Positions 15,896 through 63,000 of a stretch of 64,000 bases of DNA are shown here, one piece after another. Source of the stretch: Anthoceros angustus (taxonomy: Eukaryota; Plantae; Anthocerotophyta); contig VJWM01000107.1 in the NCBI GenBank assembly GCA_010909165.1, forward strand, positions 1,000,708 to 1,064,707. Reading direction: 5' to 3'. The notes under the pieces were generated by a model. The model worked only from the letters and a program-made list of their open reading frames with translations. It was not told where the DNA came from and made no database searches. The position numbers and the translations under genes are program-made. The first letter of the stretch is position 1. Each line of letters starts with the position of its first letter.

Positions 15896-17239
15896 AGGGT
15901 AAGTTCCTCCTCCGTGAAGTCGAAAACCTCTAAGGACTCGGTTAGTAGAGAGCATTTCATTTCCCAAGAAGCAACCTTCTAAATCAAGAGAATTTGTGTG
16001 CCCGGCTTGTTAGGCAAACAGGAGCTATGAAGGAAAGCTTAGCGAATGATGAGTCGGATGACAAGCCGCCTTAGGTTAGGACATCAAGCCTTTTGCACTT
16101 GAATGTGCGAGGTCCGAGGGTGCCACTTTGTTAGATATACCTATGCACATGTGTAACATATAGTTATAGGCAATATAGTATGGGAACACATACACACGGG
16201 CAGCAAATGTATGAGCTCTTTCTCACTATCATTCGTCAAAGGATTCCACCAACCAGTTTGCCTCAAGCTTGAGGGCTTTATGTGATGCCGTTCTGCAATG
16301 TATTACGGCTTTGTGTCACGACACGGTGGTAATCCACTACCGCAAGGGCTGCAAGAAGCGCAAGTTGGCTCTTCCTAACCCCATGAGACCGGAAAAGCGA
16401 TATATTGGTCGAATCTTGCACAACCTAGGGCCTTAATAGGCTTACCTAGGCTCACACCATGTGAGACTTTCAAGACGCTTTTACACTCTCAATTCATACA
16501 CATTTCAATTTTTCCCCATCACTCGTAGTGGCATACAAGGGCCATATGGACATGCATTCACGTATGGTAGGGCCCCTAGACCATGGCGGAAAATGCGCCG
16601 CTGTAGCTAGGTCCTACACAGACACAAGTCACATATCTTGCTCTTTAGTGATGTAGAGGCGCAAGTCCGAGCATTGCACGGTGGAGAGCTCCTCCAGCTA
16701 TCGCCACCATGCTTAAACAAAAGACACTTTCAAAAAGCGAGCCAGCGTGGGAAGAAATGCCACCATTTCTTAAGCCAAATAGACAACATTTATAAGAACG
16801 TGGTTACTAAGCATCTTGTGCTTGATCGATACTTAGATGGGGTGTCTAGAGGAGTGGATACCCTTGGTGCGAATAGCTGAGGCACACTATAGTACAAGTT
16901 GTTAAGAACCAAGTCCTATTATAGGAAAATTCAATCAAGTGGACTATAATAGACAAAAGCTAGGTAAAGATTTAGAATCACCCACCTTAGTAGAAAAAGG
17001 GACCCACACTCATCCATGCCTCGTCTCATCATCACTAACCACATCATTTATGTGCGGAAAATGCTCAGTTATGTGTGTGAGAATCACATTTATTTCATAA
17101 ATAATGTCAATCCCATTTATTGTTGCAATCATTTCATTCCGCATTTCATTGAGGATTTCATCTAGTCTTGTGCAGATTGTAAGAAGCTCATCTATGTTTA
17201 TCTCATCATCATGAAGATTTTATTATTATAATCTAATTT

Positions 17240-20200
17240 ATTTGCAATTGGGAAATTATCTTCATATGATTATAAAATGGAGCAAGAATCGCTTTAGTGA
17301 AAGGAATGAGAAGATGCGATTTTGTGTGATTTCTTGATGTTTTTAATTTCATCTTGATGAAAATGGTGCAATTTGAATGAGATTATACATCCTTGTTCTA
17401 CCTTGAATGTTCTTCTAATTGAATAAGTATGCTCCATCGATTTCCTTAAATGAATCCTTGCCTTTTGGAATAAAATAATGTGGTATTCTGATGCAAAGAT
17501 ATGCATATCGGTTGACAAACATATATAGTTGGGGGCGTAACTAGGTATTATCAGTAAAACAAGTTTTTCTCGATAACAAAATTTAATAATAATTACAAAT
17601 TGGTCTTTTATTTTAAATATTAGATAAAAATTATAAGATCTAATATATGGTATCTATGTATGGAGTTGTGTTCATCATACTTAAAGATCATAGATTTAAA
17701 GTTTAGGGTTTATAGGTAGATATCTGCCAGGCAACATCAGGCGGAGTATGCAAAACATTCAGGCATGTAGGCGGATCATGACATCATGGGCTTATGGAGA
17801 GGTAACAAATGGGAAGTCCAAGACAAATAACATGAGAAAGATGAGTAAACGTAGGTAGGTATAGATCAAATGCGGCCTCTAATCATGAAAAATTGCACAT
17901 TGAGACCGCATTGAGACAATGAATGTATAGGAGGTCAAATGTCCATGACTAATATGAGGTCTCACCAAACGATAGGCATAAATTTTCCTCTCACCCGGGT
18001 ATTGGCTCTGACATAACATTGCCAAGAATTTCATTAAAAAATGCATGAGGGGAGATGGGATGCTTGTGTTTGCCTTAGAGTCGGCAAAGAGATGTCAGGG
18101 ATGTCTAACATATATATCGTATACCTTTCTTACAAAATAGAGCGAGAAGTGAGTACAGCCAACCTCAACCAACCAACCAAGAGATGTTAACAAAGAGCCA
18201 TAGCTCCAAGAACCAGTAGGGTACATATGCTTTTCTTATAGAAAGGCTCGCTTAAACCTCAAGAGTACATTACAAAAGTGTGCCACCAAGGTCTATACAA
18301 AATGTGCATGCGCTACATTATCTTGAGCCGATAGCGAGTGACCAAGGCCCATTGAAAGGTTTAAATAGACAGAAATAAAAGGGAGCTAGCACATCAAGAC
18401 CATATATATGATGGGGCTCAAATAGACGAGGATCATGTCAGGTCAGGATGCCAAGTTGCAAAACATAAAATGCAAGGAAGGACGACTTCTGGTGTTACAT
18501 AAAATGATCAAGCACGATTTTTCTCCGCTTGCCTCCTGTTAGCAACGCTTTTTTAGATGAGCCCAAGCCGCATTTGAGTCTTTTGTCATCTTTTAGATAA
18601 TGCAATCTAGCTCATTATTGTTATTTACTTTATATTGGTTGGTATTCTTCTATTTTGCATAGATAAGTCATCTGAATTAAATTTACGCATGATTTTAGAT
18701 TTTCCTTGATCACTCTCTTTTTCTTCGAATAAGTAGTCTTCACTATACTTTTGCTCCAAGCATCATCACCTCATCGTTGGACAGATCAAAGTCCGCAGCC
18801 GCCTTCTCTGCCTGCTCACGCCTCTATGCGGCATAATGATTTGGAGCGAGTCCTAACCTCAATGTGAACTCTGATAACGAGCCCATCCAACCGCATGCCT
18901 GACGTGGCACCACCGATCTCCTCTTCCTCTTGGTTCGCCATATCCGCCAACCTCGACAACGTCGCTCCCAGCCTCTCTTCCAATCTTTGTCAACACCTCA
19001 AGTCCATAACCAGCTCGGCCTCCCATCCCTACTCCTCTTGCCATTAGTGGCAACTCGATGACCGAGTACCAAATCAGGCACGAGGCCCAAGGAATCAAGA
19101 GGATATCGATGACCAGATTGAATAAAGACGGAAAATGGAACAGATGCTAAATATATAGGCAAGAAAACTAAGATGCAAGAGGATACATAAATTGGTGTGA
19201 CAAACTATATATAGTATCAACTCATATTCAAATCATTAACTTGGGCCTTGGGGATAGATTGCTAGAACTTGGGGGAATGTACATGTTACTTAGAATGGAT
19301 GAAGCCATCAAGGATTGCAGGATTGGTTGCTCGGGCCTCAAAGCCTTGAATTAGAACAATCAATGTCCTCAGCTATGCATCTCCTCGAAACTACGGTGAA
19401 CAAGGAGCAAGCTTTGAGATCTGAGAGCTATATCGATGCACCATGACCGATTGAGGCCACTCATCGGAAGCCACGGAGGCGATCGATTAACGCCAACACA
19501 AAGAGTTGCAATGGACATACATGCATGGTTAGACATTCCATAGCCCTTTGACAAAGAAATAGGTGGTCTTGATCATGCACCGTGCCACCCCAACAGGAGA
19601 TCGCGCCAATGAGAACAATAGCCTCGGGTTTGGACGGGACATCCACATGCATAAACATGATATGCCCCATTCTCTTGCCCTATGCTTAACCATGGCAACG
19701 AAAGCCAACATAGGTATGAACAGCAGTGGAGGATGCATTCGTGGAGTAGGCCCAAGGAGAATTGCAACGCTGTATTCAATCTGTGCATCTGACTCCAACA
19801 AGAAGCTAGTGTAAGTCGAGCTGCAAAATGTGGAGCTAGAGTCACTTCCGAGGAATCCAAAGGGAAGGCCACGAGCGAGGAGAAGTGATAGGAGCGATTT
19901 CGAGTCTCGCTTTGATCTAAGCCGCCTCACCCGTGACTGGGCGCTGAGGTTTGTCAACACATCGATCACCCATTGTCTTGAATATGGCAGTCCTATGCAC
20001 CAAAGTGTTGAGGCATTATATGGTAGGCCCCTAGATTTCATGGAGCGTGATTCCAAATTGTTCGATATTTCATAGGATGACTTCGTGCTATTCATGGCCA
20101 TGTCGATGTAAGCATCCGGAGACCGGCCACGCCGAGCTCGCCAACCGCTTTGTTTACCGCTGAAAAAAAGCACTTTCCGATCGCATCCAAAGAGTAAGGT

Positions 20201-20560
20201 GCCACCATGCCAACCTTTCGATCTCCTTGAGGGTGCGCATTGTGGGTTAACTGCATGAACATGGTGCTTGTACGATTGATGGAGTGTTGTAGGAAGCATG
20301 CTTGAGTCGACTGCTCGAGCATAGGATGTCAATTTTGGAATCAAGTGGCTTGTAATTTCAAAAGATGAGGCTTTGGTTTTTGTCACTTCCTTAGATGGCA
20401 ACCTCAAACAACTCTTTAAATTAGGAAGGCTGGGGACGACTCTTTAAATTTGTAGGCCCTTGCCTCACACTACAAAAACTCGCTGGAAGAGCTGGGTATG
20501 TCTTGGAGTCAAGCATGACGGATGAATGCCTAGTCTTGTAATTCAATACCGACAAACCTC
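17240..20560. other. ~3.3-kb module inserted in the array: degraded second copy of the 580-2875 region (RING-HC gene) plus ~1.1 kb of further sequence
   Basis: ~17800-19420 aligns by eye to ~805-2870, e.g. RING-HC remnant 18380-18560 and coiled-coil 18760-19060. Unit sequence resumes at ~20560. Confidence 0.7.
18380..19043 (-). pseudogene. Degraded copy of the coiled-coil/RING-HC gene
   Basis: Shared strings CAAGTTGCAAAACATAAAATGCAAG and CTCTTGCCATTAGTGGCAACTC. Heavily indel-ridden and partly blended with unit sequence. Confidence 0.6.
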
Positions 20561-20699
20561 ATCATGAAGATTTTGTGTCTTTATCAAATCCAATGCCAAA
20601 TTAGTTTTAATTATAATTTATTGGGAGATTATTTAACTTGGCCTTGATATAAAGACCATTTTCATGCTATAACACTTAACTTACTTAATGACCTTAGAG

Positions 20700-21030
20700 A
20701 TAGAGAGGATCTACATATGTTTATCAAAATGAAGAAGCCGATGATTCAAGTGACTGCAGCTTGCCTTGATAAACTTGAGGTGGGCCAAGAGATTACTAAA
20801 ATAAACATATGTGCTCATTTGTATCACAAAAATGTTTGATCCATGGTTGCATATGTGTGTGGCGTGACGTACATGCCCACTATGTAGACGTGAAGTATAC
20901 TTTAGAGAAGAGAATACAAATAGTGGTTTATCATCTCAAGACCTGGTTTACCCTGGTTTTCACCTAACCTCATGCCCGCCTCATGGCCTTGTTACGCCCA
21001 TGTATTAGCATCCTTGGCTATGCAATCAGA
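20700..21030 (+). pseudogene. RING-H2 finger cassette a, unit 1
   Basis: STYVYQNEEADD..VT(C)AACLDKLEVGQEITKINICAHLYHKKC.DPWLHMC...TCPLCRRE (frameshifted). Confidence 0.75.
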
Positions 21031-21209
21031 AGTTGTCATGCACAACATTAGTTGTAGTTTTGTTAGGATTTAGGATTATCGTTGTTTTCTTTTCCACAAA
21101 AATCATTCAATTTTTTTTAACAATATGCTTTTCAAAAGAATATCTGCCTTTAAATCTGTCTATGTGAGATGTACGTGTTCTTCAAACATATCTTCGAAAG
21201 AGTTCACAT

Positions 21210-21392
21210 GGGCAAAATCCAAGGACAAAATAAAAAATGACACATGGGCCAAATCGAAGTACAAAATAAAAACCGAAACATGATCGAAATCCAAGGACAA
21301 AATTGAAAATGACAGCCTAAATAAACAAAAGTAGGTCAAAGTTTAGATGCACAAAATCCAAGGTCATTATAAAAAATGATGGCCTATATATG
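21210..21392 (+). promoter_or_regulatory. A-rich ~35-bp degenerate repeats (AAATCCAAGGACAAAAT...) ending in a TATA-like CCTATATA upstream of RING cassette b
   Basis: 4-5 copies of the motif in each unit (also ~25210, 29175, 46905). TATA at ~21383. Confidence 0.35.
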
Positions 21393-21549
21393 CGAAGGTA
21401 TATGCTTCTTTCACATACTTTAGAAAAGAGGGTATTTTTCATAACCTTTGAAGAGGTTTTTCTCATAACATTTACTATTCTTCGTGCATTACGGTTATAC
21501 TAGCCTACATAACATCTCAGAATATTGCGTTAGAAATCATGAACACGCC

Positions 21550-22045
21550 TTCAATTTACAATGTATCTACAAATGTTTATCAAAATGAAGAAGCCGATGA
21601 TTCGTAAGTGACTTGTCTTTGCCTTGATAGTCTTGAGGTGGGCCAGGAGATTACTAAAATAAATATATGTGCTCATTTGTATCATAAAAAATGTTTAGAT
21701 CCATGGTTACATATGTGCCGGGCGCTGCGTACATGCCCATTATGTAGACGTGAAATACACTTTAGAGAAGAGATTACAGAAAAAGGTTTACCATCTCAAG
21801 ACGAAAGTCATCTTCCACATCAATTTCGAATGACCTCATTTCCATCCGAAGAGGACATTCAAATGATAAGAGATATTGTGAGTGGGAGAGTAGAGATGGA
21901 TATAATGTCGTATGGATTGAACAAAGCTTCCGACAAGATGGAGAAAATGCAATCCAAAGTAACGACGAAGATGAAAGGCTTTTCTTGTATGTTGAATTGC
22001 AATGGTGTCTTGCTATATATGAACAGAGGCATCCGGATCAAGTAG
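21550..22045 (+). CDS. RING-H2 (C3H2C3) finger protein, cassette b, unit 1; putative E3 ligase
   Basis: ORF 21608..22045 CLCLDSLEVGQEITKINICAHLYHKKCLDPWLHMCRALRTCPLCRRE has the ATL-type spacing C-x-H-x2-H-x2-C-x3-W...CPLCR. The first two Cys are spaced C-x-C here but C-x2-C in cassette a of unit 2. Confidence 0.8.
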
Positions 22046-22685
22046 CTTTGGCACTATCCTATGGTGGATAGGGCCATCCCATCTAGTGAGTACACACACC
22101 TATTATAGATGGAGCCACCCTTTCCAACGAGTACACCTAGATGATTTAGATCATCTCATTTATATTGAGAAGAAAGTATTAAATAATCATTTGAATTAAT
22201 TTGATTATTTTAGTTATTTATTTAATAATTATCATATAACTATCTTCTATTTTTGTATAGATAAGTCATTTTTCTGATTAAATTTACATGAATATTTATG
22301 GGTTTTTCAAAACAATTCTGGTTTTGTTGAAAATATACACCAAAATAGGACAAAGCCCTCCAAAGAGACCTTCACATCTCGAGACCGAATACACCTCCAG
22401 GACAAGTGGACAATGTTGAATAAGAACACCTACACACGAACCTAAACACCGACTACCTCCGAACTCCCAATCCACTCAAAGCTTGAGACTCATAACGAAG
22501 TAAACCTCAAACGACACCATCCAACCAGCCAAGCCCGATAACATGGCCAATGTTGGATCAAAAGCTCCAAATCATACACGATACATGAGCCGCCAGCGCC
22601 ACCTAATCTTTTGAATGTGCTTGGATGAGGATGACACGTATTCACCTCACCAAAGCACATTGATAAGAGCGCTCCCAAAATCCCA

Positions 22686-22930
22686 AAGAACGTAAGAAAC
22701 CAGCCTATTGTCACTAAACCACTTTAAAACTCTTAAGAATTGGACCCCAAAGAACGAAGAAACCAGCCTATTGTCAATAAACCACTTTAAAACTCTTAAG
22801 AATTGGACCTCAAGAACGTAAGAAATCAACCTATCCTCAATAAATCACTCTAAAACTCTTAAGAATTGGACCTCAAGAACGAAGAAACCCTCCTATGGTC
22901 AATAAACCACTTTAAAACTCTAAAGAATTA
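22686..22930 (+). repeat. 4x ~63-64-bp minisatellite, unit 1
   Basis: AAGAACGTAAGAAACCAGCCTATTGTCACTAAACCACTTTAAAACTCTTAAGAATTGGACCCC x4. Confidence 0.95.
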
Positions 22931-22939
22931 GGACGCAAT

Positions 22940-24181
22940 GTTTTTGTGGACGAACTTTCCATGGATGGATGATCACGGACCTTGTTAGAAGACTCGAGCC
23001 TAAGAAGTTCAACATCGCAACAATAGTGTGGGATGAGGAAGACCCAAAGAACAATTGCCCGACGGTGCTTGGAAGACTTGGATCTAATGATCAAGCACAA
23101 ACATGAGGGTATACACTTTGGTGTTGACAAGCCCCATGGGAACTACTATTGGGACTATTTCTGGAATTTTTATTCCGACGGAAGTCGAGGCAAGTTCCTC
23201 CTCCGTGAAGTCGAAAACCTCTAAGGACTCCTGCTAGAGAGCATTTCATTTCCCAAGAAGCAACCTTCTAAATCAAGAGATCGACGGATTTGTGTGCACG
23301 GCTTGTTAGGCAAACAGGAGCCGTGAAGGAAAGCTTAGCGAATGATGAGTCGATGACAAGCCACTTAGGTTAGGACATCAAGCCTTTTGCACTTGAATGT
23401 GGTGAGGTCCCGAGGGTGCCACTTTGTTAGATATACCTATGCACATGTGTAACATATAGTTATAGGCAGTAGTAGTATGGGAACACATACACACGGGCAG
23501 CAAATGTATGAGCTCTTTCTCACTATCATTCGTCAAAGGATTCCACCAACCTTTGCCTCAAGCTTGAGGGCTTTATGTGATGCCCGCAATGTTCGCTTTG
23601 TGTCACGACCGGTGGTAATCCACTACCGCAAGGGCTGCAAGAGAACGCAAGTTGGCTCTTCCTAACCCCATGAGACCAGGAAAACGATATATTGGTCGAA
23701 TACTGCACAACCTAGGGCCTTAATAGGCTTACCTATAGGCTCACACCATGTGAGACTTTCAAGACGTTTTTACACTCTCAATTCATACACATTTCAATTT
23801 TTCCCCATCACTCGTAGTGGCATACCCTGAAGGGCCATATGGACATGCATTCACGTATGGTAGGGCCCCTAGACCATGGCGGAAACGTCGTACGACGCTC
23901 AGGTAGCTAGGTCCTACACACAGACACAAGTCACATATGCTGCTCTTTAGTGATGTAGAGGCGCAAGTCTCGAGGTCGGCACGGTGGAGAGCTCCTCCAG
24001 CGCTATCGCCACCATGCTTAAACAAAAGACACTTTCAAAACGAGCTCAGAGGAAGAAATGCCACCATTTCTTAAGCCAAATAGACAACATTTATAAGAAC
24101 GTGGTTACTAAGCATCTTGTGCTTGATCGATACTTAGATGGGGTGTCTAGAGGAGTGGATACCCTTGGTGCGAATAGCTGA
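22940..24181 (+). pseudogene. Unidentified coding-like segment of the array unit
   Basis: Recurring protein-like pieces EPKKFNIATIVWDEEDP..IARRCLEDLDLMIKHKHEGIHFRGVDKPHGNYYWDYFWNFY and MLKQKTLSK...KKCHHFLSQIDNIYKNVVTKHLVLDRYLDGVSRGVDTLGANS*. No family recognised. Confidence 0.4.
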
Positions 24182-24699
24182 GGCACACTATAGTACAAGT
24201 TGTTAAGAACCAAGTCCTATTATAGGAAAATTCAATCAAGTGGACTATAATAGACAAAGAGCTAGGTAAAGATTTAGAATCACCCACCTTAGTAGAAAAA
24301 GGGACCCACACTCATCCATGCCTCGTCTCATCATCACTAACCACATCATTTATGTGGAAAATGCTCGATTATGTGTGTGAGAATCACATTCCTCAGCATT
24401 TATTTAAATAATGTCAATCCCATTTATTGTTGCAATCATTTCATTCCGCATTTCATTGAGGATTTCATCTAGTCTTGTGCAGATTGTAAGAAGCTCATCC
24501 GTGTTTATCTCATCATCATGAAGATTTTATTATTATAATCTAATTATATGATGTTTAAATTAGTTTATTATTAAAAATATAATAAAATATAAAATAAGGA
24601 GATGAATATTTAGTATCCGTGCGAATAGACATAACGATTTTCATAGCGACTATAACGACTTAACTTACTTAATGAGAAACTCTATTGAGAGAGTAGAGA

Positions 24700-25080
24700 T
24701 AGAGAGGATCTACATATGTTTATCAAAATGACGAAGCCGATGATTCAGAAGTGACCTGTGCAGCTTGCCTTGATAAAGTTGAGGTGGGCCAAGAGATTAC
24801 TAAAATAAACATATGTGCTCATTTGTATCACAAAAAATGTTTGATCCATGGTTGCATATGTGTGTGGCGTGACGTACATGCCCACTATGTAGACGTGAAG
24901 TATACTTTAGAGAAGAGAATACAAATAGTGGTTTATCATCTCAAGACCCCGGTTTACCCTGGTTTTTCACCTAACCTCATGCCCCGCCTCATGGCCTTGT
25001 TAGCCCATGTATTAGCATCCTTGGCTATGCTAATCAGAGTTGTCATGCACAACATTAGTTGTAGTTTTGTTAGGATTTAG
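24700..25080 (+). pseudogene. RING-H2 finger cassette a, unit 2
   Basis: ORF 24751..25080 starts TCAACLDKVEVGQEITKINICAHLYHKKCL, then frameshifts. Confidence 0.8.
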
Positions 25081-25539
25081 GATTATCGTTGTTTTCTTTT
25101 CCACAAAAATCATTCAATTTTTTTAACAATATGCTTTTCAAAAGAATATCCGCCTTTAAATCTATGTGAGATGTACGTGTTCTTCAAACATATCTTCGAA
25201 AGAGTTCACATAAATCCAAGGACAAAATAAAAATGACACATGGGCCAAATCAAGTACAAAATAAAACCAAACATGATCGAAATCCAAGGACAAAATAGAA
25301 AATGACAGCCTAAATAAACAAAAGTAGGTCAAAGTTTAGATGCACAAAATCCAAGGTCATTATAAAAAATGATGGCCTATATATGAAGGTATATGCTTCT
25401 TTCACATACTTTAGAAAAGAGGGTATTTTCATAACCTTTTGAAGAGGTTTTCTCATAACATTTACTATTCTTCGTGCATTACGGTTATACTAGCCTACAT
25501 AACATCTCAGAATATTGCGTTAGAAATCATGAACACGCC

Positions 25540-26026
25540 TTCAATTTACAATGTATCTACAAATGTTTATCAAAATGAAGAAGCCGATGATTCAAGTGAC
25601 TTGTCTTTGCCTTGATAGTCTTGAGGTGGGCCAGAGATTACTAAAATAAATATATGTGCTCATTTGTATCATAAAAATGTTTAGATCCATGGTTACATAT
25701 GTGCGGCTGCGTACATGCCCATTATGTAGACGTGAAATACACTTTAGAGAAGAGATTAGAAAAAGGTTTACCATCTCAAGACGAAAGTCATCTTCCACAT
25801 CAATTTCGAATGACCTCATTTCCATCCAAGAGGACATTCAAATGATAAGAGATATTGTGAGTGGAGAGTAGAGATGGATATAATGTCGTATGCGCGGATT
25901 GAACAAAGCTTCCGACAAGATGGAGAAAATGCAATCCAAAGTAACATTTAAGATGAAAGGCTTTTCTTGTATGTTGAATTGCAATGGTGTCTTGCTATAT
26001 ATGAACAGAGGCATCCGGATCAAGTA
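25540..26026 (+). pseudogene. RING-H2 finger cassette b, unit 2
   Basis: LRTCPLCRREIHFREE in ORF 25656..25871; homologous to 21550-22045. Confidence 0.8.
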
Positions 26027-26656
26027 GCTTTGGCACTATCCTATGGTGGATAGGGCCATCCCATCTAGTGAGTACACACACCTATTATAGATGGAGCCAC
26101 CCTATCCAACGAGTACACCTAGATGATTTAGATCATCTCATTTATATTGAGAAGAAAGTATTAAATAATCATTTGAATTAATTTGATTATTTTAGTTATT
26201 TATTTAATAATTATCATATAACTATCTTCTATTTTGTATAGATAAGTCATTTTTCTGATTAAATTTACATGAATATTTATGGGTTTTTCAAAACAATTCT
26301 GGTTTTGTTGAAAATATACACCAAAATAGGACAAAGCCCTCCAAAGAGACCTTCACATGTGAGACCGAATACCAAAGAACAAGTGGACAATGTTGAATAA
26401 GAACACCTACACACGAACCTAAACACCGACTACCCAACTCCCAATCCACTCAAAGCTTGAGACTCATAACGTAAACCTCAAACGACACCATCCAACCAGC
26501 CAAGCCTCGATAACATGGCCAATGTGTCAAAAGCTCCAAATCATACACGATACATGAGCCGCCTAAATCGCCACCTAACCGCTTGAATGTGCTTGGATGA
26601 GGATGACACGATTCACCTCACCAAAGCACATTGATAAGAGCGCTCCCAAAATCCCA

Positions 26657-26896
26657 AAGAACGAAGAAACCAGCCTATTGTCACTAAACCACTTTAAAAC
26701 TCTTAAGAATTGGACCCCAAAGAACGAAGAAACCAGCCTATTGTCACTAAACCACTTTAAAACTCTTAAGAATTGGACCTCAAGAACGTAAGAAATCAAC
26801 CTATCCTCAATAAATCACTCTAAAACTCTTAAGAATTGGACAACGTAAGAAACCAGCCTATGGTCAATAAACCACTTTAAAACTCTAAAGAATTAG
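26657..26896 (+). repeat. 4x ~63-bp minisatellite, unit 2
   Basis: Same motif; reads ETSLLSLNHFKTLKNWTPKN in frame. Confidence 0.95.
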
Positions 26897-28669
26897 ACCG
26901 AATGTTTTTGTGGACGAACTTTCATGGATGGATGATCACGGACCTTGTTAGAAGACTCGAGCCTAAGAAGTTCAACATCGCAACAATAGTGTGGGATGAG
27001 GAAGACCCAAAGAACAATTGCCCGACGGTGCTTGGAAGACTTGGATCTAATGATCAAGCACAAACATGAGGGTATACACTTTCGGGGTGTTCACAAGCCC
27101 CATGGGAACTACTATTGGGACTATTTCTGGAATTTTTTATTCGGCACGGAAGCTGAGGCAGCAAGTTCCTCCTCTGTGAAGCTGAAAACCTCTAAGGACT
27201 CCGGTTAGTAGAGAGCATTTCATTTCCCAAGAAGCAACCTTCTAAATCAAGAGACTGACGGATTTGTGTGCCTGGCTTGTTAGGCAAACAGGGAGCTGTG
27301 AAGGAAAGCTTAGCGAATGATGAGTCAGATGACAAGCCAGCCTTAGGTTAGGACATCAAGCCTTTTGCACTTGAATGTGGTGAGGTGAGGGTGCCACTTT
27401 GTTAGATATACCTATGCACATGTGTAACATATAGTTATAGACAGTTAGTATGGGAACACATACACACGGGCAGCAAATGTATGAGCTCTTTCTCACTATC
27501 ATTCGTCAAAGGATTCCACCAACCGCTTGCCTCAAGCTTGAGGGCTTTATGTGATGCCATTCTCGCAATGTTCGCTTTGTGTCACGACCGGTGGTAATCC
27601 ACTACCGCAAGGGCTGCAAGAGAACGCAAGTTGGCTCTTCCTAACCCCATGAGACCAGGAAAACGATATATTGGTCGACATCGCACAACCTAGGGCCTTA
27701 ATAGGCTTACCTGTGCTCACACCATGTGAGACTTTCAAGACGCTTTTACACTCTCAATTCATACACATTTCAATTTTTCCCCATCACTCGTAGTGGCATA
27801 CTCAAGGGCCATATGGACATGCATTCACGTATGGTAGGGCCCCTAGACCATGGCGGAAACGCTGCACGACGCCTGTAGCTAGGTCCTACACATGACACAA
27901 GTCACATATGCCGCCTTTAGTGATGTAGAGGCGCAAGTCTCGAATAGCTTCGGCACGGTGGAGAGCTCCTCCAGCGCTATCGCCACCATGCTTAAACAAA
28001 AGACACTTTCAAAACGAGCCCAGGGAAGAAATGCCACCATTTCTTAAGCCAAATAGACAACATTTATAAGAACGTGGTTACTAAGCATCTTGTGCTTGAT
28101 CGATACTTAGATGGGGTGTCTAGAGGAGTGGATACCCTTGGTGCGAATAGCTGAGGCACACTATAGTACAAGTTGTTAAGAACCAAGTCCTATTATAGGA
28201 AAATTCAATCAAGTGGACTATAATAGACAAAGAGCTAGGTAAAGATTTAGAATCACCCACCTTAGTAGAAAAAGGGACCCACACTCATCCATGCCTCGTC
28301 TCATCATCACTAACCACATCATTTATATGGAAAATGCTCGCTTATGTGTGTGAGAATCACATTCCTCAACATTTATTTCATAAATAATGTCAATCCCATT
28401 TATTGTTGCAATCATTTCATTCCGCATTTCATTGAGGATTTCATCTAGTCTTGTGCAGATTGTAAGAAGCTCATCTATGTTTATCTCATCATCATGAAGA
28501 TTTTATTATTATAATCTAATTATATGATGTTTAAATTAATTTATTATCAAAAGTCTAATAAAATATAAAATAAGGAGATGAATATTTAGTATCCGTGCGA
28601 ATAGACATAACGCTTTTCATAGCGACTATAACGACTTAACTTACTTAATGAGAAACTCTATTGAGAGAG

Positions 28670-30941: not shown

Positions 30942-30954
30942 TCCTCCCCCACTT

Positions 30955-44251: not shown

Positions 44252-44393
44252 AATGTTGGATCAAAAAGCTCCAAATCATACACGATACATGAGCCGCCCA
44301 AACTGCCACCTAACCACCTTGAATGTGCTTGGATGAGGATGACACGTATTCACCTCACCAAAGCACATTGATAAGAGCGCTCCCAAAATCCCA

Positions 44394-52500: not shown

Positions 52501-53247
52501 AAACCAAGGGATTGGCGCGGTCCGGAGCTTGCTGTAACGCCTGTGACGCCTGGGGTTCTTTCCTTCACACTTGTCCCGCTAGTTGTGTTCAATTGAGAAG
52601 TGTTGAGTGGATGGTTGGAAGCCCGGGCAATTGAGGGAGAGAGAGAGAGAGGAGAAGATTGGGTGAAGGAGTGACTAAACAATCAGACGCGATGCGAGGT
52701 GAGAGGGGTTGAGAAGGGAACTAATTGAGAGGCTAAAGGAGATTTGTGTGAATCCAAAGAAACCAAACCGGTGGAAGGCGCAAGGGGAACAGGCCTTGTA
52801 AAGTTGTGTGAGTGTGGCGCCTTTGTGTGTGTGTGTGAGCGTGAGGATTTGTGGAATTTAGGTCCCTAGGAATCGGTGTGTGTGTGTGTGTGTGTGGAGC
52901 GATCCGTGCGCGCCGTGGACGCCTGCGGGATCCGCGGCCGGCCGAAATAAGTCGCTAGGGTTTGGGTGTGGGACCCACCTCGTGGTCGAAGCAACCACGG
53001 TGAGAGAGCCACCGCCGTGGAATGAGATTTGGTCGTGGAATAAGAGCCGTGGTAGCTAGACAAGTCGGGGGTAGTGGTTGAGTAGATAGGTAAGAGGAGT
53101 AATAGCAAGTAAGTCTTGACTTAGGTGAAGGTGAGCGATAGAAGTTAGCGCCTCACAAACCATTCACAAACCATTGGGAGCGAATCCTAAGCCTACAACG
53201 ACATTGAGGGTGAATGTGGACCTCCATCGGACACAATCCACTCCACA
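49510..53247 (+). repeat. 5' LTR of gypsy D (~3.74 kb)
   Basis: TG...CA bounded and followed by a PBS. 49510-51140 is repeated at 58173-59753 and 52126-53103 at 60513-61503. Contains (GA)n/(GT)n runs at 52635-52895. Confidence 0.8.
49823..52194 (+). pseudogene. LTR-embedded long coding-like frame, unknown protein (frameshifted)
   Basis: Downstream of TATATAT/TATAAG (49732, 49778). Pieces: MGKARGRRVGEPGKLNPRNDVILLKQ (3' copy), KPGFMEERWNYMN, MFRRQEADYLSDHLPLLHEVVKG, coiled-coil DEEEAKRKQSEEDKRNLEEIRAKIQED, YFYHRPVWGSYYAEATLEELSEEEVQLGW...DAKSR*. Confidence 0.55.
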
Positions 53248-53329
53248 TTTTGGCGCTGTCGGGAATGAAATCACAAGGACGAGGTAGAACTAACCATAGC
53301 TTAAGTAGAGTCTAGCATTAGATTGATAG

Positions 53330-56300
53330 ATGGATGCCTCGTGGAGACAAGCGATTCGATCCGACCGGGGAAACGCTCGCAAGACGGCAAGCAATGGAAA
53401 GATTGCAGAGTTACGAGGAGAGCACGGAGATCACACTTGGACGAGGAAGAGGCAGAGTCGGAGAATCGATCTTATCGGATTCGATTCCCAACCTCGACTA
53501 TGAAGCGTACAGGCCGTGTACCCGATTCCACCTTGTCTTTTGATCTCGCCCAGTTGCCTAGACCACCGGTCCAACTGGAATGTAGAGGTCCCGCACGTAG
53601 TGGCCGCCAACTACCGCAGCGTTGAAAGTACTACCCCAGAAGGCGGCTGCGATTCGTGCATTACTAAGCAATCTTACCTGTAAGAAAAGAAGGGCCATGA
53701 GGATCCCGACGAGTTTGTCGAGCTTTTGAGCACTGACGCCAACCGTGAGGATGCGATCGTGCCCCACTGCTTTATGGAGTCTTACGCGAGCGGCGCCAAG
53801 TGGTACAAGCGGAGTACATAGCTTCCACACCCCCGCCTACTTTGGGGCCTTGAAGAGAGCTTTTGTGAAAGGTTCAGAGGGGTCGATGTGGAAGGATATG
53901 TCTTGTCCAAACTCGAGGAGGAGAGGAAGAAGGAGACACAGCTTATGTGGAAAGGTTCCACACGGATCGGGCCGGTCCGCACTGAGCTAATGGCCATTCG
54001 CGGTTTGCAAGAGGATTGGGCGCGAGATGGGAAGGCACGTGCCTCCACGAGAAAGATTTGGATCGACAAAAGCCTCGAACTATGAGGAGTCCAACGCGAA
54101 GAGAAGAAGAACTCGAACAAGGGCGCACGGAAGGACAAAAAGAAATACAAAAAGAAGAAGAAGTACTATTCGCCCTCCTCGATAGCCATGGAGGAGGAAG
54201 AGGCGCTTCATCAAAGCGGGAAGGAAGAGAAGTCCAACCACAAAACGACGAGGGACTCGATGGAGTCGAAAAAAGGGCATGCGAATCCAAATGGACGGGA
54301 GCAAGGCACGCCACACTTAACGCGAGGGTTGCGATTTCGGATGGCATCACTGTGTAACTCCCTTAGCAGCCGAGACCGGATTCGAGGGTGAAGTGCAAAC
54401 GAGGACATGGACGGTGGGACTCGAGTCGACACATGGGCGAAAACCCGCAAGAGGAAAAAAGGATGAGTCGCTCCCGGCGTCGTGGGAAGGTTATGGATAT
54501 GATCCGACAAGAATCGAACAGACCCCGTATTTTGGCCACATGACCCACCCACCGCCACCTGTTTCAACGACCGCAACATCTCAAACAGCCATCATGCTGC
54601 GAAATGACGGTGGGGTTGGCAAGGAGAAACAGAAGCACACAGTGTTCCTTTCAATTTGACGCTATCATGGACCAAAAGTTCATGATAACGCTCGGACAGC
54701 TTCTCGTGGACAATCCTGCACCGCCAAAGAACTGGGGCATTGAAGGCGGCACAACCCAAGAAGAGAGAACCTTTCCACCCCAAGGCCGAAACCCTTTGTG
54801 AATATGGTGGCCATGATGGACTGAGACTGGAGCTATAGAAATTGGGATGTGTAATCAAGAAGGTGCCGCTAGATTCCGGTCGAGTCAACATCATGACAGA
54901 GGAGACCGCCTAAGCTTGGGTTGAGATAGAACATACATCAAAGGTGTTCCGGACATGTCCAAAATGGCGCCGTAGGGGAGTTGACGGAGTCCTAACCCAT
55001 ATTGGTACCATTCACTCATGGACTACGTGGTCATTAAACAAAAAGCGCCTGTGGTATGAGGTTCTCATTGACGAACATGGATGTATGGGGCACGTTGCAC
55101 CTTCAAATGGGAGAAGGAAGTGGGATTCAAACCGGACGGGACCCCAAAATTAAGGAGGAAGGATATGTTTGACTTGGAGCAGATAATGAGACACCCACAA
55201 ACGGAGGGATACACCTCAAGATACCTGGGGAGAGGATGAGAAGGAGAAATTCCCATTCGCATATATTTCGTGGTCGATGAAGAGGACGAGAGAGATATTC
55301 CCATTCCATCAACCTATTAGGGTGCTATGGAGTCACAATTGACAACCCGGTTGGACCGAGGAGACCGACGAGGTCGAGGAACAAGAAGTAGAGGTGAGCC
55401 GGGAGCGACGATCCGGACAAACTTCGGAGGGTGCGAGGAGGGTGTCTCACGTTTTACCTCGACGACCTATTCCGGAATGGGGAATGCGAAGGAGAACCAA
55501 GACATGGAGGAAGGGTTGCATCACATCCGCGGTGGAGAGAGAGGGGTGCATGATGAGGTCAAGGATGTGGAAGTGTTGCCCGGCAAGGTCCTTAAGTTTT
55601 CGAAGGATGAATGCAGACTTGGAAAGGGGTATGAAACAAATTGCGGAATTTATCCACGTTTTGCTTTTGACGTTACATATGAAGGGTATACCGAGGGAGT
55701 GGGGAGCACAAGATTGATCTCGAGCCGGTGTGCACAACCGGATACCGCAATACAAGCTAAATCCAAAGTATTCAAGGTAAAGGAACAATTGAGCTTTACT
55801 CACAGACGTCATATATCCTATTGTGACATCGGAGGGTAGCCCCAATTGTGGTGGTCCCAAGGGAAGATACGGGTCCCAGATTGGAGGAAGTTAAACAAGG
55901 TGACCAAAAAGACCATTACCCGCTTCCATTCATAGACAACATAATCGGACTTAGTTGCGTGGAGAATGGTCTACCTGCTCGGATGGGTATTCGGTATAAT
56001 ATCTCGTGGAGAGTGATTGGCCACTTTCTTCACTACAGATCGGGAACCTATGCCTACAAACGGAGCGCTCGGATTAACAGGGCACCGTGATCCTTCATGC
56101 GATGTTGTCAAGATTTTCAAGGAATACCTTAGGGACTTCATGGAGGTCTTCCGGATGACTTCGTGTTTGAGCAGCGAAAGATCACCTCAACCACCTTCGC
56201 AAATGTCCGAACGGTGTCAACAGACAATTGTGTCTACATCCCGAGAAAATGTTATTTCGGCATGAGGGTATTTTTGTTGGGGCACCGTGATTGCTGGGGA

Positions 56301-58140
56301 TAGAGGTCGACCCGGATAAGGTCAAAATCATTACCGCCTCAAGCCACCTACCACATCAAGGAGCTTAGGGATTCTGAATGGTAGGCTATTATCAAGGTTT
56401 GTGAAGAATTTCTCCGTAAGGCCCGCTACGTAATTGCTTCGCAAGGACCAGGAGTGGAATGGACGCAAAACGAGAGGAGGCCTTCAATGATCTTCGACCA
56501 CCGATCACAAAGACCCACGCTGCGGGCCGATCGAACAAGAAGTTCCACGTGTTTGTAGACGTTTCGCCTATGCAATCGGTACCATTCTAAGCCAAAGGGA
56601 TGACAAGAAGCACGATTATCCAATCTATTATGCAGGAGGCACCACCGACGCAGAAGAAAGTATACCACCACCGAGAGGGAGGCGCTAGGGATGGTGTACT
56701 CGGTTCGCAAGTTTCGGCCACTATTTGCTATCCTACGAGTTCGTCTTCCATGTGGACCACCTCAAACACCGGTAAACAAACCGACTTGTCCGGACGCAGC
56801 AAGATGGATCCTACTGCAAGAATTCACGCTCACGGTGGAGACCAGAGGAGGGAGTAAACATGTGAATGCAGATTACATTTCGAGGAAAACAGAGGAGGTT
56901 ACACAGACCAAAACGACGATTTTCCGATGAAGCTCGTCATGAAAGTTAGAGGGGGGAAGTCAACCATAAGGCGAGGGTAAATGGTGGCTCGGCAGAAATG
57001 AGAAGGGGAGAACGGATACACAAGGCCCACTCGAGGAGATGATGGAATTCGAAACGGGAAAATACCATCGGATCTTTCAAACCCCAGCAAAAGCGCTAGG
57101 CACTATTCGCGTCCGCTTGTACGACGCAAAGACAATCATAAATCGGGACCGGATGGGAGGTTATGGGTAACAAGGAGCAGTTATCCGAGGCCGAGAGATG
57201 CAGAGGGGAAGCGGAGGACATTTTGCGCACATATCACGTGCAAGAAGGTGCTTGAAACATCGGTGGCAAACCATGCATCGTGATGCTAGGGAGTTTGTTA
57301 AACGCGATGCTCGCCGAGGGTTGGGAAACCGTCAAACCACTCAATGGCCAATGGTTCCGATATTGGCCCCGCGCCATTCGAGAAAATGGGGAATAGACTT
57401 TGTTGGTCCCATACCCAAAAACGAGGACGCGACAAAACCAATACATCCTCGTGGCTGCACATTGCACGCGATGGTGGAAGCCCAAGCACCGCAGTAGACA
57501 TGCCATGTATGTTCCTCTATGAATGATTATCACTGATATGTCCCCTTGAGCTTGTCACGATGAGGGTCACATTTCTCAACGGTTATATCTCATATGACGA
57601 TCTACTTCAACGTCACAGAAAACGACTCCTTATAATCCCAAGGCAAATGGCTTAACGGAAAAGGCGAATGGGCTCAGTGATCCTCAACAAGCTAACGGTG
57701 GAATACGCTGACGATCGGGATCTTAAGCTTCACCCGCCTGGGCATACAGGATCGCAGAGAAAATAACAACGCAACAAACACCGTACTACCTACGCCATTC
57801 TCCTAATGCCTATTGAGTTTGAAATTCCATGAAACTAACCGCATGGCGAGAGGAAAGTCACCGAACGCCTGTCGCTAAACATACAGAGGATAGGGAACAG
57901 TGAGCGTCATGCGTGATATTCAAAGCGAAACGGAAAATATGGCATGACAAGGCGGAAGCAAGAGTGATTCTGTGACTTGGCCTCACGACAATAGGTACAT
58001 GCACTTTCCGCAAGCTCCACCTTCATGGATGGGGCTATAGGGTTCTCAAGTCTTCAAATGGCGATAACCGCAAGAGTTAGGTGGCTCCACTACCAACCCG
58101 AGTCAATGGGTGGAGGGTCAAGAAGTATTATACATAAGTT
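53330..58140 (+). pseudogene. pol: Gypsy D gag-pol (heavily frameshifted)
   Basis: Protease VPLDSG (~54865), RT KKDHYPLPFIDNI, IFKEYLRDFMEVF, RH EREALGMVYSVRKFR, ARWILLQEFTL, HVNADYISR, IN GGHFA, KWGIDFVGPIP, ANGLTEKANG, TRVNGWRVKKYY. No chromodomain. Confidence 0.88.
56996..57010 (+). other. Exact internal copy of the 3' polypurine tract (candidate central PPT)
   Basis: AAATGAGAAGGGGAG at 56996-57010 is identical to 58156-58170. Confidence 0.5.
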
Positions 58141-58172
58141 GGCGAGGACGCCAACAAATGAGAAGGGGAGTA

Positions 58173-59753
58173 TGTAAACGATCTAGTCACGGAAACCCTA
58201 AAATGTGCCCAAGTGTTTTTTTTTGGGTGTGAAAATAAGTCGTAGTTGGAGGTATATTATAGAAAATGTCCTTGGCCTATGGACTTTTCTTTGTTTTATT
58301 TAGGTTAGAAAATAAATGGTCCGGAATTTGGTGTTCCTTGGCCCATGGACTGGAATGTTCCTAAAAAGTCTATATATGTGAGATAGGGGGTTTGGAATAA
58401 TTAGAGTCTAGTCTATAAGTTGGGGTCGACTGACGGTAGCGAATGAGTGTGGTGGATTGGGATGGGGAAAGCAAGAGGTCGCAGAGTAGGGGAACCCGGG
58501 AAACTTAACCCTAGGAATGATGTAATCCTGCTCAAACAACGGAGCGCAACGACGGCAAGCGCCGACGCGAGAGGTCGCGGTCGGGGCACCGTGATCGCAG
58601 GAGGCGCGAGGCGCAACGACGAAGGGAAGGAGCTCAACCCGCCGATATCGCGAGGCGACGCAGAGGAGGAAGGCGCGACAGCAGCGCCCTTGCCGAGGAG
58701 GTAGGAACCCCGAGACCGACCTCCGAAATTCGCAGCGAGGTGGTGGCGCGAGACCGAAGACCGTGAGAGGATGGCGCCCAAGGTCACCACCGAAGCTTGC
58801 CCAATGGCAACATGGATCATTGGAAAGTTCGAGCTGAGTCGTGAAGGAGCCGGGTTTCATGGAAGAGCGGTGGAATTACATGAACTGGACCGGTGCAGGA
58901 GGCCACACGGCGATGACAGCGGGATTTAGAGCCGCAGGATTGGGACCGGAGTGGTTAGAAGGGTGCGGGGCAAGGAGGAGGCGGGCGGTTGGTGATGGAG
59001 CCGCAAAAAAGAAGCACGGCAAAAGCAGCTTAAAGCGGGCGATCATGAACCCAACGGCCGTTGAGGGACGGCAATGCAGCTTGATGGGTCCGCCGGGTTT
59101 TATGTTTCGCAGACAAGAAGCGGATTATTTGTCCGACCACTTGCCGCTCCTTCATGAAGTGGTCAAGGGGCAAGATCGAAGCGACCTCTTCGGTTGTGTG
59201 AAGAGAGGTTGAACTTGATTTCTCCGCCTCCTCTCTAATCTCACCATTTCGTCCATCTTTATGTTTACGCTAACTGCCCGCTGAGGTGGAGATTGTAGCC
59301 TCCCTCCACATGTGGAAGCCGGTTAGGGAGGTGAAATGGAAGGCGGAGGAGCCCAAGGAGGAAAAATCGGATAGCCGGGGAGTCGGTGGACAGCGCCTGG
59401 AGGAGGAGAAGGAAAATTCCCACCAAAGAAAAGGAGGAAGACCGGGGTGAAAGGGCATCAAAAAAGGTGAAGGCGGCCACTGTCGAAAAAGGCCAAGGCA
59501 GAAATGAAAGCCAAACGGCTTGGAGGTGGCAAGAGGAGGCGCGATCCGAGGACAATTTTGCCGACTGGATGCGATGATGAATCAACCTGAGGGTTTAGGC
59601 GACCTCGAGGCGGACCCTCCTCAAAGATGGGAAGAGATTTTCAAGGGGACTCCACCGCAACAGAGGTGGATGCAACCAATTGGTGAGGGTGCGCACTGCC
59701 GGGGAGGAAAGTTCTCGAGGGATGGCGTCGCGGGGCCGCCACAACAAGTGGAC
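58173..59753 (+). repeat. 3' LTR of gypsy D, first 1.6 kb
   Basis: Copy of 49510-51140; switches to array-unit sequence at the microhomology CAAGTGGAC. Confidence 0.85.
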
Positions 59754-60016
59754 AATGTTGAATAAGAACACCTACACACGAACCTAAACACCGACTACCG
59801 AACTCCCAATCCACTCAAAGCTTGAGACTCATAAGTAAACCTCAAACGACACCATCCAACCAGCCAAGCCTCGATAACATGGCCAATGTTGGATCAAAAG
59901 CTCCAAATCATACACGATACATGAGCCTAAGCGCCACCTAATCTTGAATGTGCTTGGATGAGGATGACACGTATTCACCTCACCAAAGCACATTGATAAG
60001 AGCTCCCAAAATCCCA

Positions 60017-60256
60017 AAGAACGAAGAAACCAGCCTATTGTCACTAAACCACTTTAAAACTCTTAAGAATTGGACCCCAAAGAACGTAAGAAACCAGCCT
60101 ATTGTCAATAAACCACTTTAAAACTCTTAAGAATTGGACCTCAAGAACGTAAGAAATCAACCTATCCTCAATAAATCACTCTAAAACTCTTAAGAATTGG
60201 ACAACGAAGAAACCAGCCTATGGTCAATAAACCACTTTAAAACTCTAAAGAATTAG
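60017..60256 (+). repeat. 4x ~63-bp minisatellite (fifth copy of the block)
   Basis: Same motif. Confidence 0.9.
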
Positions 60257-60512
60257 ACACAATGTTTTTGTGGACGAACTTTGGCGGATGGACGATCACG
60301 GACCTTGTTAGAAGACTGGAGCCTAAGAAGTTCAACATCGCAACAATAGTGTGGGATGAGGAAGACCCAGAACAATTGCCCGACGGTGCTTGGAAGACTT
60401 GGATCTAATGATCAAGCACAAACATGAGGGTATACACTTTGGGTGTTGACAAGCCCCATGGGAACTACTATTGGGACTATTTCTGGAATTTTTATTCCAG
60501 ACGGAAGTCGAG

Positions 60513-61503
60513 GTAGGGCGCGCAGATAGCGAGGCCGAGGTGGTAGCAACCTAAAGATAATTAGATGTCGACGACCTAGGATCGCCCGAATTGTGGCGCG
60601 CCCTTCGAGCATAGCCATCTTAGGACCTAAAATCCGGGGTGGTGCCCCACCGATGTATAAGAGGGGCGACTAGGTCCCTCACGCCGATAACCCCTGCTGA
60701 GATCCCCACGCCGCGTGGGTCGGGGAGACGTCCGATCGATGAGGCGGTGCGCGAGACGCCCTAGGTGGTCGAGCTTGCTCCGCACCGGGGAGGAGGGGTG
60801 ATAAAGCAATCTTGGCCGACAAAGGAGGAGGAAACCAAGGGATTGGCGCGGGTCCGGAGCTTGCTTCAGCCCGCTGTGACGCCTGGGGTTCTTCTTCCTT
60901 CACACTTGTCCCTCGCTAGTTACCAAGAGAAGTGTTGAGTGGATGGCTGAAGCTGCGACTGAGGGAGAGAGAGAGAGGGAGAAGATTGGGTGAAGGAGTG
61001 ACTAAACACCCAGACGCGAGGTGTGAGAGGGTTGAGAAGGGAACTAATTGAGAGGCTAGTAAAGGAGATTGTGTGAATCCAAAAGAAACCAAACCGGTGG
61101 AGAAGGTATGGAAGGGAACAGCTCCCTTGTAAAGTTGTGTGAGTGTGGCGCCTTGTGTGTGTGTGAGCGGTGAGGATTTGTGGAACTAGGTCCCTAGGAA
61201 TCGTGTGTGTGTGTGCATGAAGTGTGGAGTGCAGAATAAAGCGGATCCGCGTACGCCGTGGACGCCCGTGGTGGATCCGCGCATCTAGAAATAAGTCGCT
61301 AGGGTTTGGTGTGGACCCACCCTTGGTTGAAGCAACTACCAGTGAGAGCCACCGCCGTGGAATAAGATTTGGTCGTGGAATAAGAGCCGTGGTAGGGACA
61401 AATGGGGGTAGTAGTGGTTGAGTAGATAGGTAAGAGGAGTAATACCAGCGGCAAGGTGAGAGCTCGGGCGGCAGCAATGGAGGACGAGGACGCCAAGTCG
61501 AGG
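60513..61503 (+). mobile_element. Displaced, circularly permuted fragment of the gypsy D LTR within unit sequence
   Basis: Equals 52192-53103 followed by 52126-52191; both ends carry AAGTCGAGG, which is shared with the unit. Confidence 0.75.
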
Positions 61504-63000
61504 CAGCAAGTTCCTCCTCCGTGAAGTCGAAAACCTCTAAGGACTCGGTTAGTAGAGAGCATTTCATTTCCCAAGAAGCAACCTTCTAAATCAAGAGATA
61601 GATTTGTGTGCACGGCTTGTTAGGCAAACAGAGCCGTGAAGGAAAGCTTAGCGAATGATGAGTCGATGACAAGCCAGCCTTAGGTTAGGACATCAAGCCT
61701 TTTGCACTTGAATGTGGTGAGGTCCCGAGGGTGCCACTTTGTTAGATATACCTATGCACATGTGTAACATATAGTTATAGGCAGCATTAGTATGGGAACA
61801 CATACACACGGGCAGCAAATGTATGAGCTCTTTCTCACTATCATTCGTCAAAGGATTCCACCAACCAGCCTCAAGCTTGAGGGCTTTATGTGATGCCGTT
61901 CTCGCAATGTTCCGTCACGACCGGTGGTAATCCACTACCGCAAGGGCTGCAAGAGAACGCAAGTTGGCTCTTCCTAACCCCATGAGACCGGAAAACGATA
62001 TATTGGTCGAATGCACAACCTAGGGCCTTAATAGGCTTACCCACAGGCTCACACCATGTGAGACTTTCAAGACGTTTTACACTCTCAATTCATACACATT
62101 TCAATTTTTCCCCATCACTGTAGTGGCATACCAAGAAGGCCATATGGACATGCATTCACGTATGGTAGGGCCCCTAGACCATGGCGGAAACGCTCTCGTA
62201 GCTAGGTCCTACACACGACACAAGTCACATATCTTGCTCTTTAGTGATGTAGAGGCGCAAGTCGAATTCCGCACGGTGGAGAGCTCCTCCAGCGCTATCG
62301 CCACCATGCTTAAACAAAAAGACACTTTCAAAAACGAGCCGCGTGAGGAAGAAATGCCACCATTTCTTAAGCCAAATAGACAACATTTATAAGAACGTGG
62401 TTACTAAGCATCTTGTGCTTGATCGATACTTAGATGGGGTGTCTAGAGGAGTGGATACCCTTGGTGCGAATAGAGGCACACTATAGTACAAGTTGTTAAG
62501 AACCAAGTCCTATTATAGGAAAATTCAATCAAGTGGACTATAATAGACAAAGAGCTAGGTAAAGATTTAGAATCACCCACCTTAGTAGAAAAAGGGACCC
62601 ACACTCATCCATGCCTCGCCTCATCATCACTAACCACATCATTTATGTGCGGAAAATGCTCGATTATGTGTGTGAGAATCACATTCCTCTAGCATTTATT
62701 TGTAAATAATGTCAATCCCATTTATTGTTGCAATCATTTCATTCCGCATTTCATTGAGGATTTCATCTAGTCTTGTCAGTGATTGTAAGAAGCTCATCGT
62801 GTTTATCTCATCATCATGAAGATTTTATTATTATAATCTAATTATATGATGTTTAAATTAGTTTATTATTAAAAATATAATAAAATATAAAATAAGGAGA
62901 TGAATATTTAGTATCCGTAAATAGACATAACGATTTTCATAGCGACTATAACGACTTAACTTACTTAATGAGAAACTCTATTGAGAGAGTAGAGATAGAG

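Follow-up and report, generated by a model that had tools for sequence, protein, structure and literature searches.

The window analysed here, a stretch of 64,000 nucleotides of Anthoceros angustus contig VJWM01000107.1, carries a tandem array of ~4.0-kb units, each of which holds two segments resembling a RING-H2 domain, termed cassettes a and b. On balance, we favour the view that this array is a young or homogenised gene-bearing macrosatellite in transposon-rich, probably methylated chromatin, and that cassette b is probably open in many of its units. The monomer would then be a mosaic of a dead fragment (a), a complete-looking intronless gene (b), a minisatellite of four 63-bp repeats and ~2 kb of anonymous DNA, and most frameshifts in the window would be base-calling errors at methylated cytosines. 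Transcription of the array, if it occurs, would yield large amounts of a small RING-H2 protein, a candidate E3 ubiquitin ligase.

Self-BLAST of the window and BLAST of a unit consensus against it revealed a repeat whose units follow one another head-to-tail, at offsets of 3999, 3976 and 3963 bp. The array spans 15898-63001, where ~18.7 kb of array DNA, or ~4.7 unit-equivalents (two complete and six partial units), is distributed over 47 kb. Four foreign blocks split the array, and a fifth break terminates it at 63002, with unrelated sequence beyond. The units and partial copies are as follows, in coordinates of the window.

15898-17241, plus strand: copy A, partial, unit positions 2495-3849; its left edge adjoins transposon-like DNA
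20695-24693, plus strand: unit B, complete, 3999 bp as read
24694-28669, plus strand: unit C, complete, 3976 bp as read
28670-30496, plus strand: copy D, unit positions 1-1854
44252-46397, plus strand: copy E1, unit positions 1848-3993
46398-49508, plus strand: copy E2, unit positions 1-3165
59744-60513, plus strand: copy G1, unit positions 1704-2490
61495-63001, plus strand: copy G2, unit positions 2482-3993; unrelated sequence from 63002

As read, the units are 95.3-97.5% identical to the consensus. The unit junctions B/C, C/D and E1/E2 are intact and all in the same phase. The array thus shows what defines a macrosatellite, namely units longer than 1 kb, head-to-tail order, constant phase and very high inter-unit identity. 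Since the units differ by only 0-0.55% outside error-prone contexts, the array is young or strongly homogenised. A preliminary description, made from the letters of the stretch, had reported at least four near-identical units with a period of ~3955-3976 bp, homogenised and repeatedly hit by long terminal repeat (LTR) elements. BLAST confirms the tandem units, with offsets of 3963-3999 bp, the low divergence outside error-prone contexts agrees with the homogenisation, and the LTR hits are real, as exemplified by a block with TG..CA ends and a 5-bp target duplication (insertion 2 below).

Two RING-like segments were detected in each of the four units covering the region by tblastn with the one long open reading frame (ORF), and short diagnostic motifs of the cassettes recur at the expected spacing across units. 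The cassettes and the other features of the unit are located as follows.

20709-20978, plus strand: cassette a of unit B, a dead RING-H2 fragment with a 1-bp deletion at ~20838 and a TGA at ~20865
21205-21303, plus strand: A-rich direct repeats upstream of b, three of ~36 bp
21386-21392, plus strand: TATA-like box TATATAT, ~150 bp upstream of the b ATG
21539-22045, plus strand: cassette b of unit B, ATG to TAG, 169 codons, with a single TAA at 21605-21607
22682-22934, plus strand: minisatellite of four 63-bp repeats inside the unit, recurring at 26653-26899, 44390-44645, 48354-48593 and 60013-60258
25529-26027, plus strand: cassette b of unit C, with 8 frame-changing differences from copy B
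29495-29994, plus strand: cassette b of unit D, with 7 frame-changing differences from copy B
47223-47711, plus strand: cassette b of unit E2, with 11 frame-changing differences from copy B

The remainder of the unit, beside the minisatellite, is ~2 kb of anonymous DNA, and ten further ORFs of the unit gave no match in Pfam.

Cassettes a (unit positions 15-249) and b (869-1098) have a 235-bp block in common, at ~88% identity. The block begins ~20 nt before the codons for YQNEEADD and stops 13 codons past the RING, and downstream of it the two sequences are unrelated; the shared YQNEEADD-RING block with differing C-termini that had been described earlier is thereby recovered. The other copies of cassette a begin at ~24708, 28684 and 46411, and the lesions are identical in all four copies. 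One copy of a matches Pfam zf-RING_11 (E=4.7e-7), and the copy in unit C reads C-A-A-C at the first ligand pair, yet is broken downstream. Stops lie just upstream of the cassette, and the 1-bp deletion, which is in a clean context, falls between ligands 6 and 7. All four copies lack an in-frame ATG and carry both the fixed 1-bp deletion and the TGA. Cassette a is therefore a dead remnant of a RING-H2 gene, truncated at its 5' end, and cannot encode a protein as it stands. Therefore, of the two RING-H2 E3-ligase cassettes originally proposed for each unit, both stand as RING-H2 segments, but a, having no start, a fixed frameshift and a stop, does not stand as a ligase gene.

Cassette b, by comparison, has a gene-like layout in all four units. 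A promoter-like box is followed by an ATG, ~168 codons and a stop, and each copy as read has at least one lesion, nearly all of them at error-prone sites. The ATG at 21539 is the first in-frame ATG following a stop, and the TAG at 22043-22045 is followed by an AT-rich 3' flank. The TATA-like box lies in the same context in four of four units (the context motif starts at 21381, 25374, 29339 and 47070), and it and the A-rich repeats are found upstream of b as the preliminary description had it. A consensus splice-donor-like GTGAGT occurs inside the b ORF at 21877-21882 (codons I-V-S-G); if it is used as a donor, the C-terminus of b would differ from that of the intronless reading.

The RING-H2 of b lies near the N-terminus, at ~21614-21748 in unit B. 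Copy B matches Pfam PF13639 zf-RING_2 with 35.1 bits (E=1.6e-8; gathering cut-off 27.3). The nearest solved structures are the RING-H2 ligases RNF13, RNF165/Arkadia, EL5 and RNF38 (E=3e-8 to 1e-5), which align with residues 3-51 of the 145-residue b ORF and with which zinc ligands 2-8 and the E2-contact Trp of b are in register.

The comparison of the two cassettes bears on the history of the unit. Fixed differences between a and b, defined as those present in at least three of the four copies on each side and read in the frame of b, are mostly synonymous in the RING core, at 7 against 4 non-synonymous (pS 0.26, pN 0.037; binomial P=0.002). In the 15 codons past the RING core, there are no synonymous and 8 non-synonymous fixed changes. 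The preponderance of synonymous differences in the RING core indicates that both a and b were coding genes, with purifying selection acting on the RING, while they diverged. The a/b differences are common to all units, so the amplification came last. A plausible sequence of events would begin with the divergence of two RING-H2 paralogues under purifying selection on the RING, after which a piece of one paralogue would have been placed 0.85 kb upstream of the other. The resulting 4-kb segment would then have been amplified head-to-tail, with unequal exchange or gene conversion keeping the units near-identical, and LTR elements would have inserted into the array later.

Whether b is open depends on how the differences between copies are read, and these have a peculiar composition throughout the window. 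Between units B and C there are 74 gap openings and 60 mismatches, and one LTR pair shows 109 gap openings versus 63 mismatches. Of the inter-copy repeat differences, 65-77% contain insertions or deletions (indels). A CpG is found within 2 nt of 55-75% of the difference events but of only 17-43% of alignment columns. Natural decay at methylated CpG gives transitions, not indels; indels clustered at CG and CHG sites and in homopolymers are typical of uncorrected nanopore-type base-calling of methylated DNA. To estimate the true divergence, CG, CHG, homopolymer and gap-adjacent columns were removed. After this masking, the divergence is 0-0.55% for the array units, 0-0.64% for two LTR pairs and 0-0.19% for tandem duplications of transposon sequence. 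Window-wide, all repeat pairs are 0-0.96% divergent outside CpG/CHG contexts (for example 2212-4627, 7176-9151, 20695-30496, and 49596-51142 versus 58242-59753). With a masked divergence so near zero, the units of the array are near-identical and the insertions young, and the apparent divergence of 4-15% appears to be mostly artefact. Along with most of the frameshifts, it looks like sequencing noise from uncorrected long-read base-calling at methylated cytosines. On this assembly, dating by LTR divergence and the calling of pseudogenes would therefore be badly misleading. The recommendation, made at the outset, that the unit be polished with accurate reads was apt, as most frameshifts are at CpG/CHG or homopolymer sites.

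Cassette b follows the same pattern. Among its copies, 25 of the 26 frame-changing differences are at CG, CHG or homopolymer sites, including all of those in copies C and D and 10 of the 11 in E2. From 21608, copy B has an open frame of 145 codons, which it holds across 13 CpGs. At ~6 sites a deletion is common to copies C, D and E2 but absent from copy B, whose reading there keeps all RING ligands and the 145-codon frame. The TAA position at codon 23 of copy B reads compatibly with GAA in the other b copies and in cassette a. These comparisons suggest that the errors are systematic and that copy B is the better read. Judged by the position of its lesions, b is rather probably intact in many units of the real genome.

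Several points weigh against an open b and against the wider reading built on it. As read, none of the four b copies is fully open: codon 23 of copy B is a TAA, a stop that overlaps a CpG, and copies C, D and E2 carry 8, 7 and 11 frame changes. The majority consensus of four to six copies remains frameshifted, because the errors recur at the same sites, and the intactness of b rests on the assumption that they are systematic. A chance open stretch of 145 codons appeared in 6% of simulated units. In three of four copies, and in a clean, CpG-free context, the first ligand pair of b reads C-L-C in place of C-x2-C, so that b departs from the eight-ligand RING-H2 spacing (C-x2-C ... C-x-H-x2-H-x2-C ... 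C-x2-C). The replacement of the first C-x2-C zinc-ligand pair by C-x-C makes the putative E3 ligase activity of b doubtful. In addition, the C-terminal 90 residues are without relatives in the library searched (see below), the AlphaFold model of the 145-aa ORF is uninformative (predicted local distance difference test score, pLDDT, 36), and the heavy cytosine methylation of the region, which we consider probable, is deduced from the error pattern.

Many of these points would also be expected if the amplified segment merely held the remains of RING-H2 genes, with all copies of a and b dead and the array an ordinary heterochromatic repeat without a protein-coding role. Cassette a is certainly dead in four of four copies, the first ligand pair of b is non-canonical, no b copy is open from ATG to stop as read and the consensus is frameshifted too. 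The lesion density in b is not below that in the rest of the unit, and the transposon-filled and seemingly heavily methylated context suits such a pseudogene satellite. However, the frame changes in b are nearly all at CG, CHG or homopolymer sites and copy B stays in frame across its CpGs, the unit divergence of at most 0.55% leaves too little time for decay after amplification, the RING core bears the mark of past purifying selection, and b retains promoter-like and 3' features. We therefore regard a satellite of pseudogenes as possible but unlikely, and prefer a macrosatellite with an open b.

The relatives of b were sought in protein libraries. A word-index search with the 145-residue ORF gave no match. 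An exhaustive HMMER search of 1.84 billion representatives gave 1295 matches at E<=1e-3, none below 1e-30, and the best 150 of these align to the RING only, the best with E=1.4e-16. For the C-terminal 90 residues, no relative at E<1e-5 was found among the 1.84 billion representatives; weaker ones may rank beyond the best 150 of the 1295 matches. The best matches are plant RING-H2 proteins of an ordinary kind, several of them with duplicated RINGs, apart from one low-complexity artefact, and a metagenome scan with b found generic marine RINGs only. Among the best RING matches are predicted plant proteins with 2-8 tandem whole RING-H2 modules (Daucus, Nymphaea and others). In plants, therefore, small RING-H2 genes seem to have been duplicated repeatedly in local tandem, or to have been merged in gene models.

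Small plant RING-H2 proteins (PF13639; ATL/EL5, BRH1/RHA-like and NIP-like) and the animal proteins RNF13, RNF165/Arkadia and RNF38 are 40-51% identical to b over the RING only. They share with b the C-x-H-x2-H-x2-C...C-P-x-C ligand pattern and the conserved Trp after ligand 6. In contrast to them, b has a C-x-C first pair, a RING at the N-terminus and the unmatched C-terminal 90 residues. The spacing of the RING had been described as ATL-type; this was not borne out. The RING of b is preceded by ~24 polar or acidic residues, with no hydrophobic segment, and the ATL subfamily was rejected because b has neither a transmembrane segment nor a GLD motif upstream of the RING.

The blocks that interrupt the array are as follows.

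17242-20640, no strand assigned: insertion 1, ~3.4 kb, a non-autonomous repeat, part of which resembles 2103-4062; it replaces ~75 bp of the unit
30497-44251, minus strand: insertion 2, a 13.75-kb nested LTR-retrotransposon block with TG..CA ends and the 5-bp target duplication AATGT
49509-59743, no strand assigned: insertion 3, a 10.2-kb LTR element with LTRs of ~1.5 kb at 49596-51142 and 58242-59753
60514-61494, no strand assigned: insertion 4, ~0.98 kb, with a 9-bp flanking duplication (AAGTCGAGG) and related to 52183-53104, internal to insertion 3

No Pfam domain was found in insertion 1. Insertion 2 is nested, with gypsy-type and copia-type reverse transcriptase (RT) remnants on the minus strand; its domains are RVT_1 at 33556-33927 and RVT_2 with an SH3-like domain at 36307-37514. 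Insertion 3 links unit position 3165 with position 1704, and no target duplication flanks it. Array sequence has therefore been lost there, either through recombination between two elements or by a deletion, as the junction suggests. The target-site duplications, and the distinct junctions in different units, indicate that the array predates the insertions. The left edge of the array (15898) and insertion 4 (60514) lie within ~5 bp of the same unit position, ~2485-2490. This position may be a hotspot of insertion or breakage, or the agreement may be a coincidence; the units and the inserts differ.

The transposon proteins of the window are distant from annotated ones. A gypsy RT ORF is 50-59% identical to fern, conifer, angiosperm and Volvox proteins alike, 59% being the maximum, and the best match of a copia ORF is 68% identical over a third of its length. 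Such distances fit a plant-like source far from every annotated genome of the library, not a cereal and unlikely to be Marchantia polymorpha itself. Neither an exact-protein look-up nor a search of Rfam gave a match. To the left of the array, 9785-11330 is a 1.4-kb degenerate minisatellite of 71% GC, with periods of 40, 66 and 92 in Tandem Repeats Finder (TRF), which is open in several frames for want of A/T. It adjoins a gypsy RT ORF (11558-12478, minus strand) and a Ty3-capsid-like ORF (13040-13621, minus strand), at a place where one would look for RNase H and integrase. Transposon-like sequence is duplicated locally in tandem at 2212-4627 (1.2 kb, two copies), 7176-9151 (1.0 kb, two copies) and 13344-14243 (448 bp, two copies). 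The first two pairs are those with 0-0.19% divergence after masking, and the 448-bp duplication overlaps the capsid-like ORF.

The preliminary description had further proposed an ampliconic ubiquitin-ligase family on a sex-limited, B or otherwise non-recombining chromosome, homologous or parallel to ORF162 of Marchantia polymorpha and concerned with gametogenesis, dosage or conflict. ORF162 is a RING-finger gene family that numbers a few hundred copies and is set among V-specific repeats (bioRxiv 10.1101/2021.02.08.430207), and it lies with the YR1 repeats of the M. polymorpha V (Y) chromosome (bioRxiv 10.1101/2021.02.08.430207, summarising Okada et al. 2001). Compared by description, the anatomy of the array fits the published one (bioRxiv 10.1101/2021.02.08.430207): a RING-finger ORF of ~160-170 codons (162-168 for b as read) is co-amplified with repeats, and short sub-repeats lie inside larger units. 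Near-identical units, dense young insertions and apparent methylation are typical of low-recombination regions, and transposon proteins equidistant from those of ferns, seed plants and green algae fit a poorly annotated non-seed plant. However, kinship of b with ORF162 is unlikely, because the protein searches with b were blank beyond the RING; a close relative of ORF162 should score far better than the best match found, which covers the RING only. Unlike in the Marchantia case, moreover, the transposon proteins of the window are without a close match in any annotated plant, and b is unmatched outside the RING in public proteins. Taken together, the proposal is a doubtful one.

We also give little credence to a lineage-specific version of it, in which most units would carry an intact and transcribed b and the copies would number dozens to hundreds. 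They would lie on a sex-limited, B or other non-recombining chromosome of a little-sampled and probably seedless plant, as an independent parallel to ORF162 and to the ampliconic genes of animal Y chromosomes. Were it true, b would act in gametogenesis or genetic conflict, with its unique C-terminal domain picking the substrate.

A known B-chromosome repeat of similar unit length was also considered. The rye E3900 repeat has a 3.9-kb unit, is transcribed and is tied to the drive-control region (PMC11549084); it is described as gag-derived, with no RING mentioned, and some E3900-like transcripts reportedly encode an unknown ~160-aa protein (PMC11549084). The array resembles it in its unit of ~3.9-4.0 kb and in forming tandem arrays in repeat-rich DNA. 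The E3900 single-guide RNA (sgRNA) target, designed on AF222021, has no match in the window at up to 3 mismatches or at up to 4 edits including indels, and the matches at 5 edits are at chance level. E3900 was rejected on the absence of this target, its gag-derived nature and the distance of the window transposon proteins from any Triticeae protein.

It is most improbable that the unit is an assembly artefact, or that it belongs to a mobile element which captured gene fragments (a Pack-MULE, a Helitron or the inner part of an LTR element): a gene fragment beside a gene does recall capture events, and the assembly is noisy, but the three head-to-tail junctions are in the same phase without terminal repeats or target duplications, Pfam and the junctions reveal no transposase, helicase or reverse-transcriptase remnants in the unit, whose only Pfam domain is the RING, and assembly duplication is excluded because the insertion junctions are distinct between units, which carry different insertions at different positions with their own duplications, unlike a collapsed or duplicated assembly.

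In structure and function, the closest kind to the array is a gene-bearing macrosatellite or ampliconic array. Human examples of gene-bearing macrosatellites are D4Z4, whose 3.3-kb unit carries the intronless DUX4 ORF, RS447, whose 4.7-kb unit carries the ORF of the USP17 deubiquitinase, and the TSPY/DYZ5 array. As in these, the monomer is several kb long, the units are head-to-tail and near-identical, each bears a small intronless ORF with a promoter-like region, and the context is heterochromatic and, here by way of the error pattern, apparently methylated. The array differs from them in belonging to a plant genome, in encoding a RING-H2 protein with an unmatched C-terminus and in carrying a dead paralogue fragment in each unit.

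Animal sex chromosomes offer well-documented gene-bearing macrosatellites and ampliconic gene families. Such arrays are known, to our knowledge, from very few cases in plants, of which Marchantia ORF162 is the classic. A second, unrelated RING-H2 array would make it testable whether non-recombining or heterochromatic regions repeatedly come to keep or exploit genes by amplifying one of the ubiquitin-ligase type, and whether such an array is expressed despite methylation.

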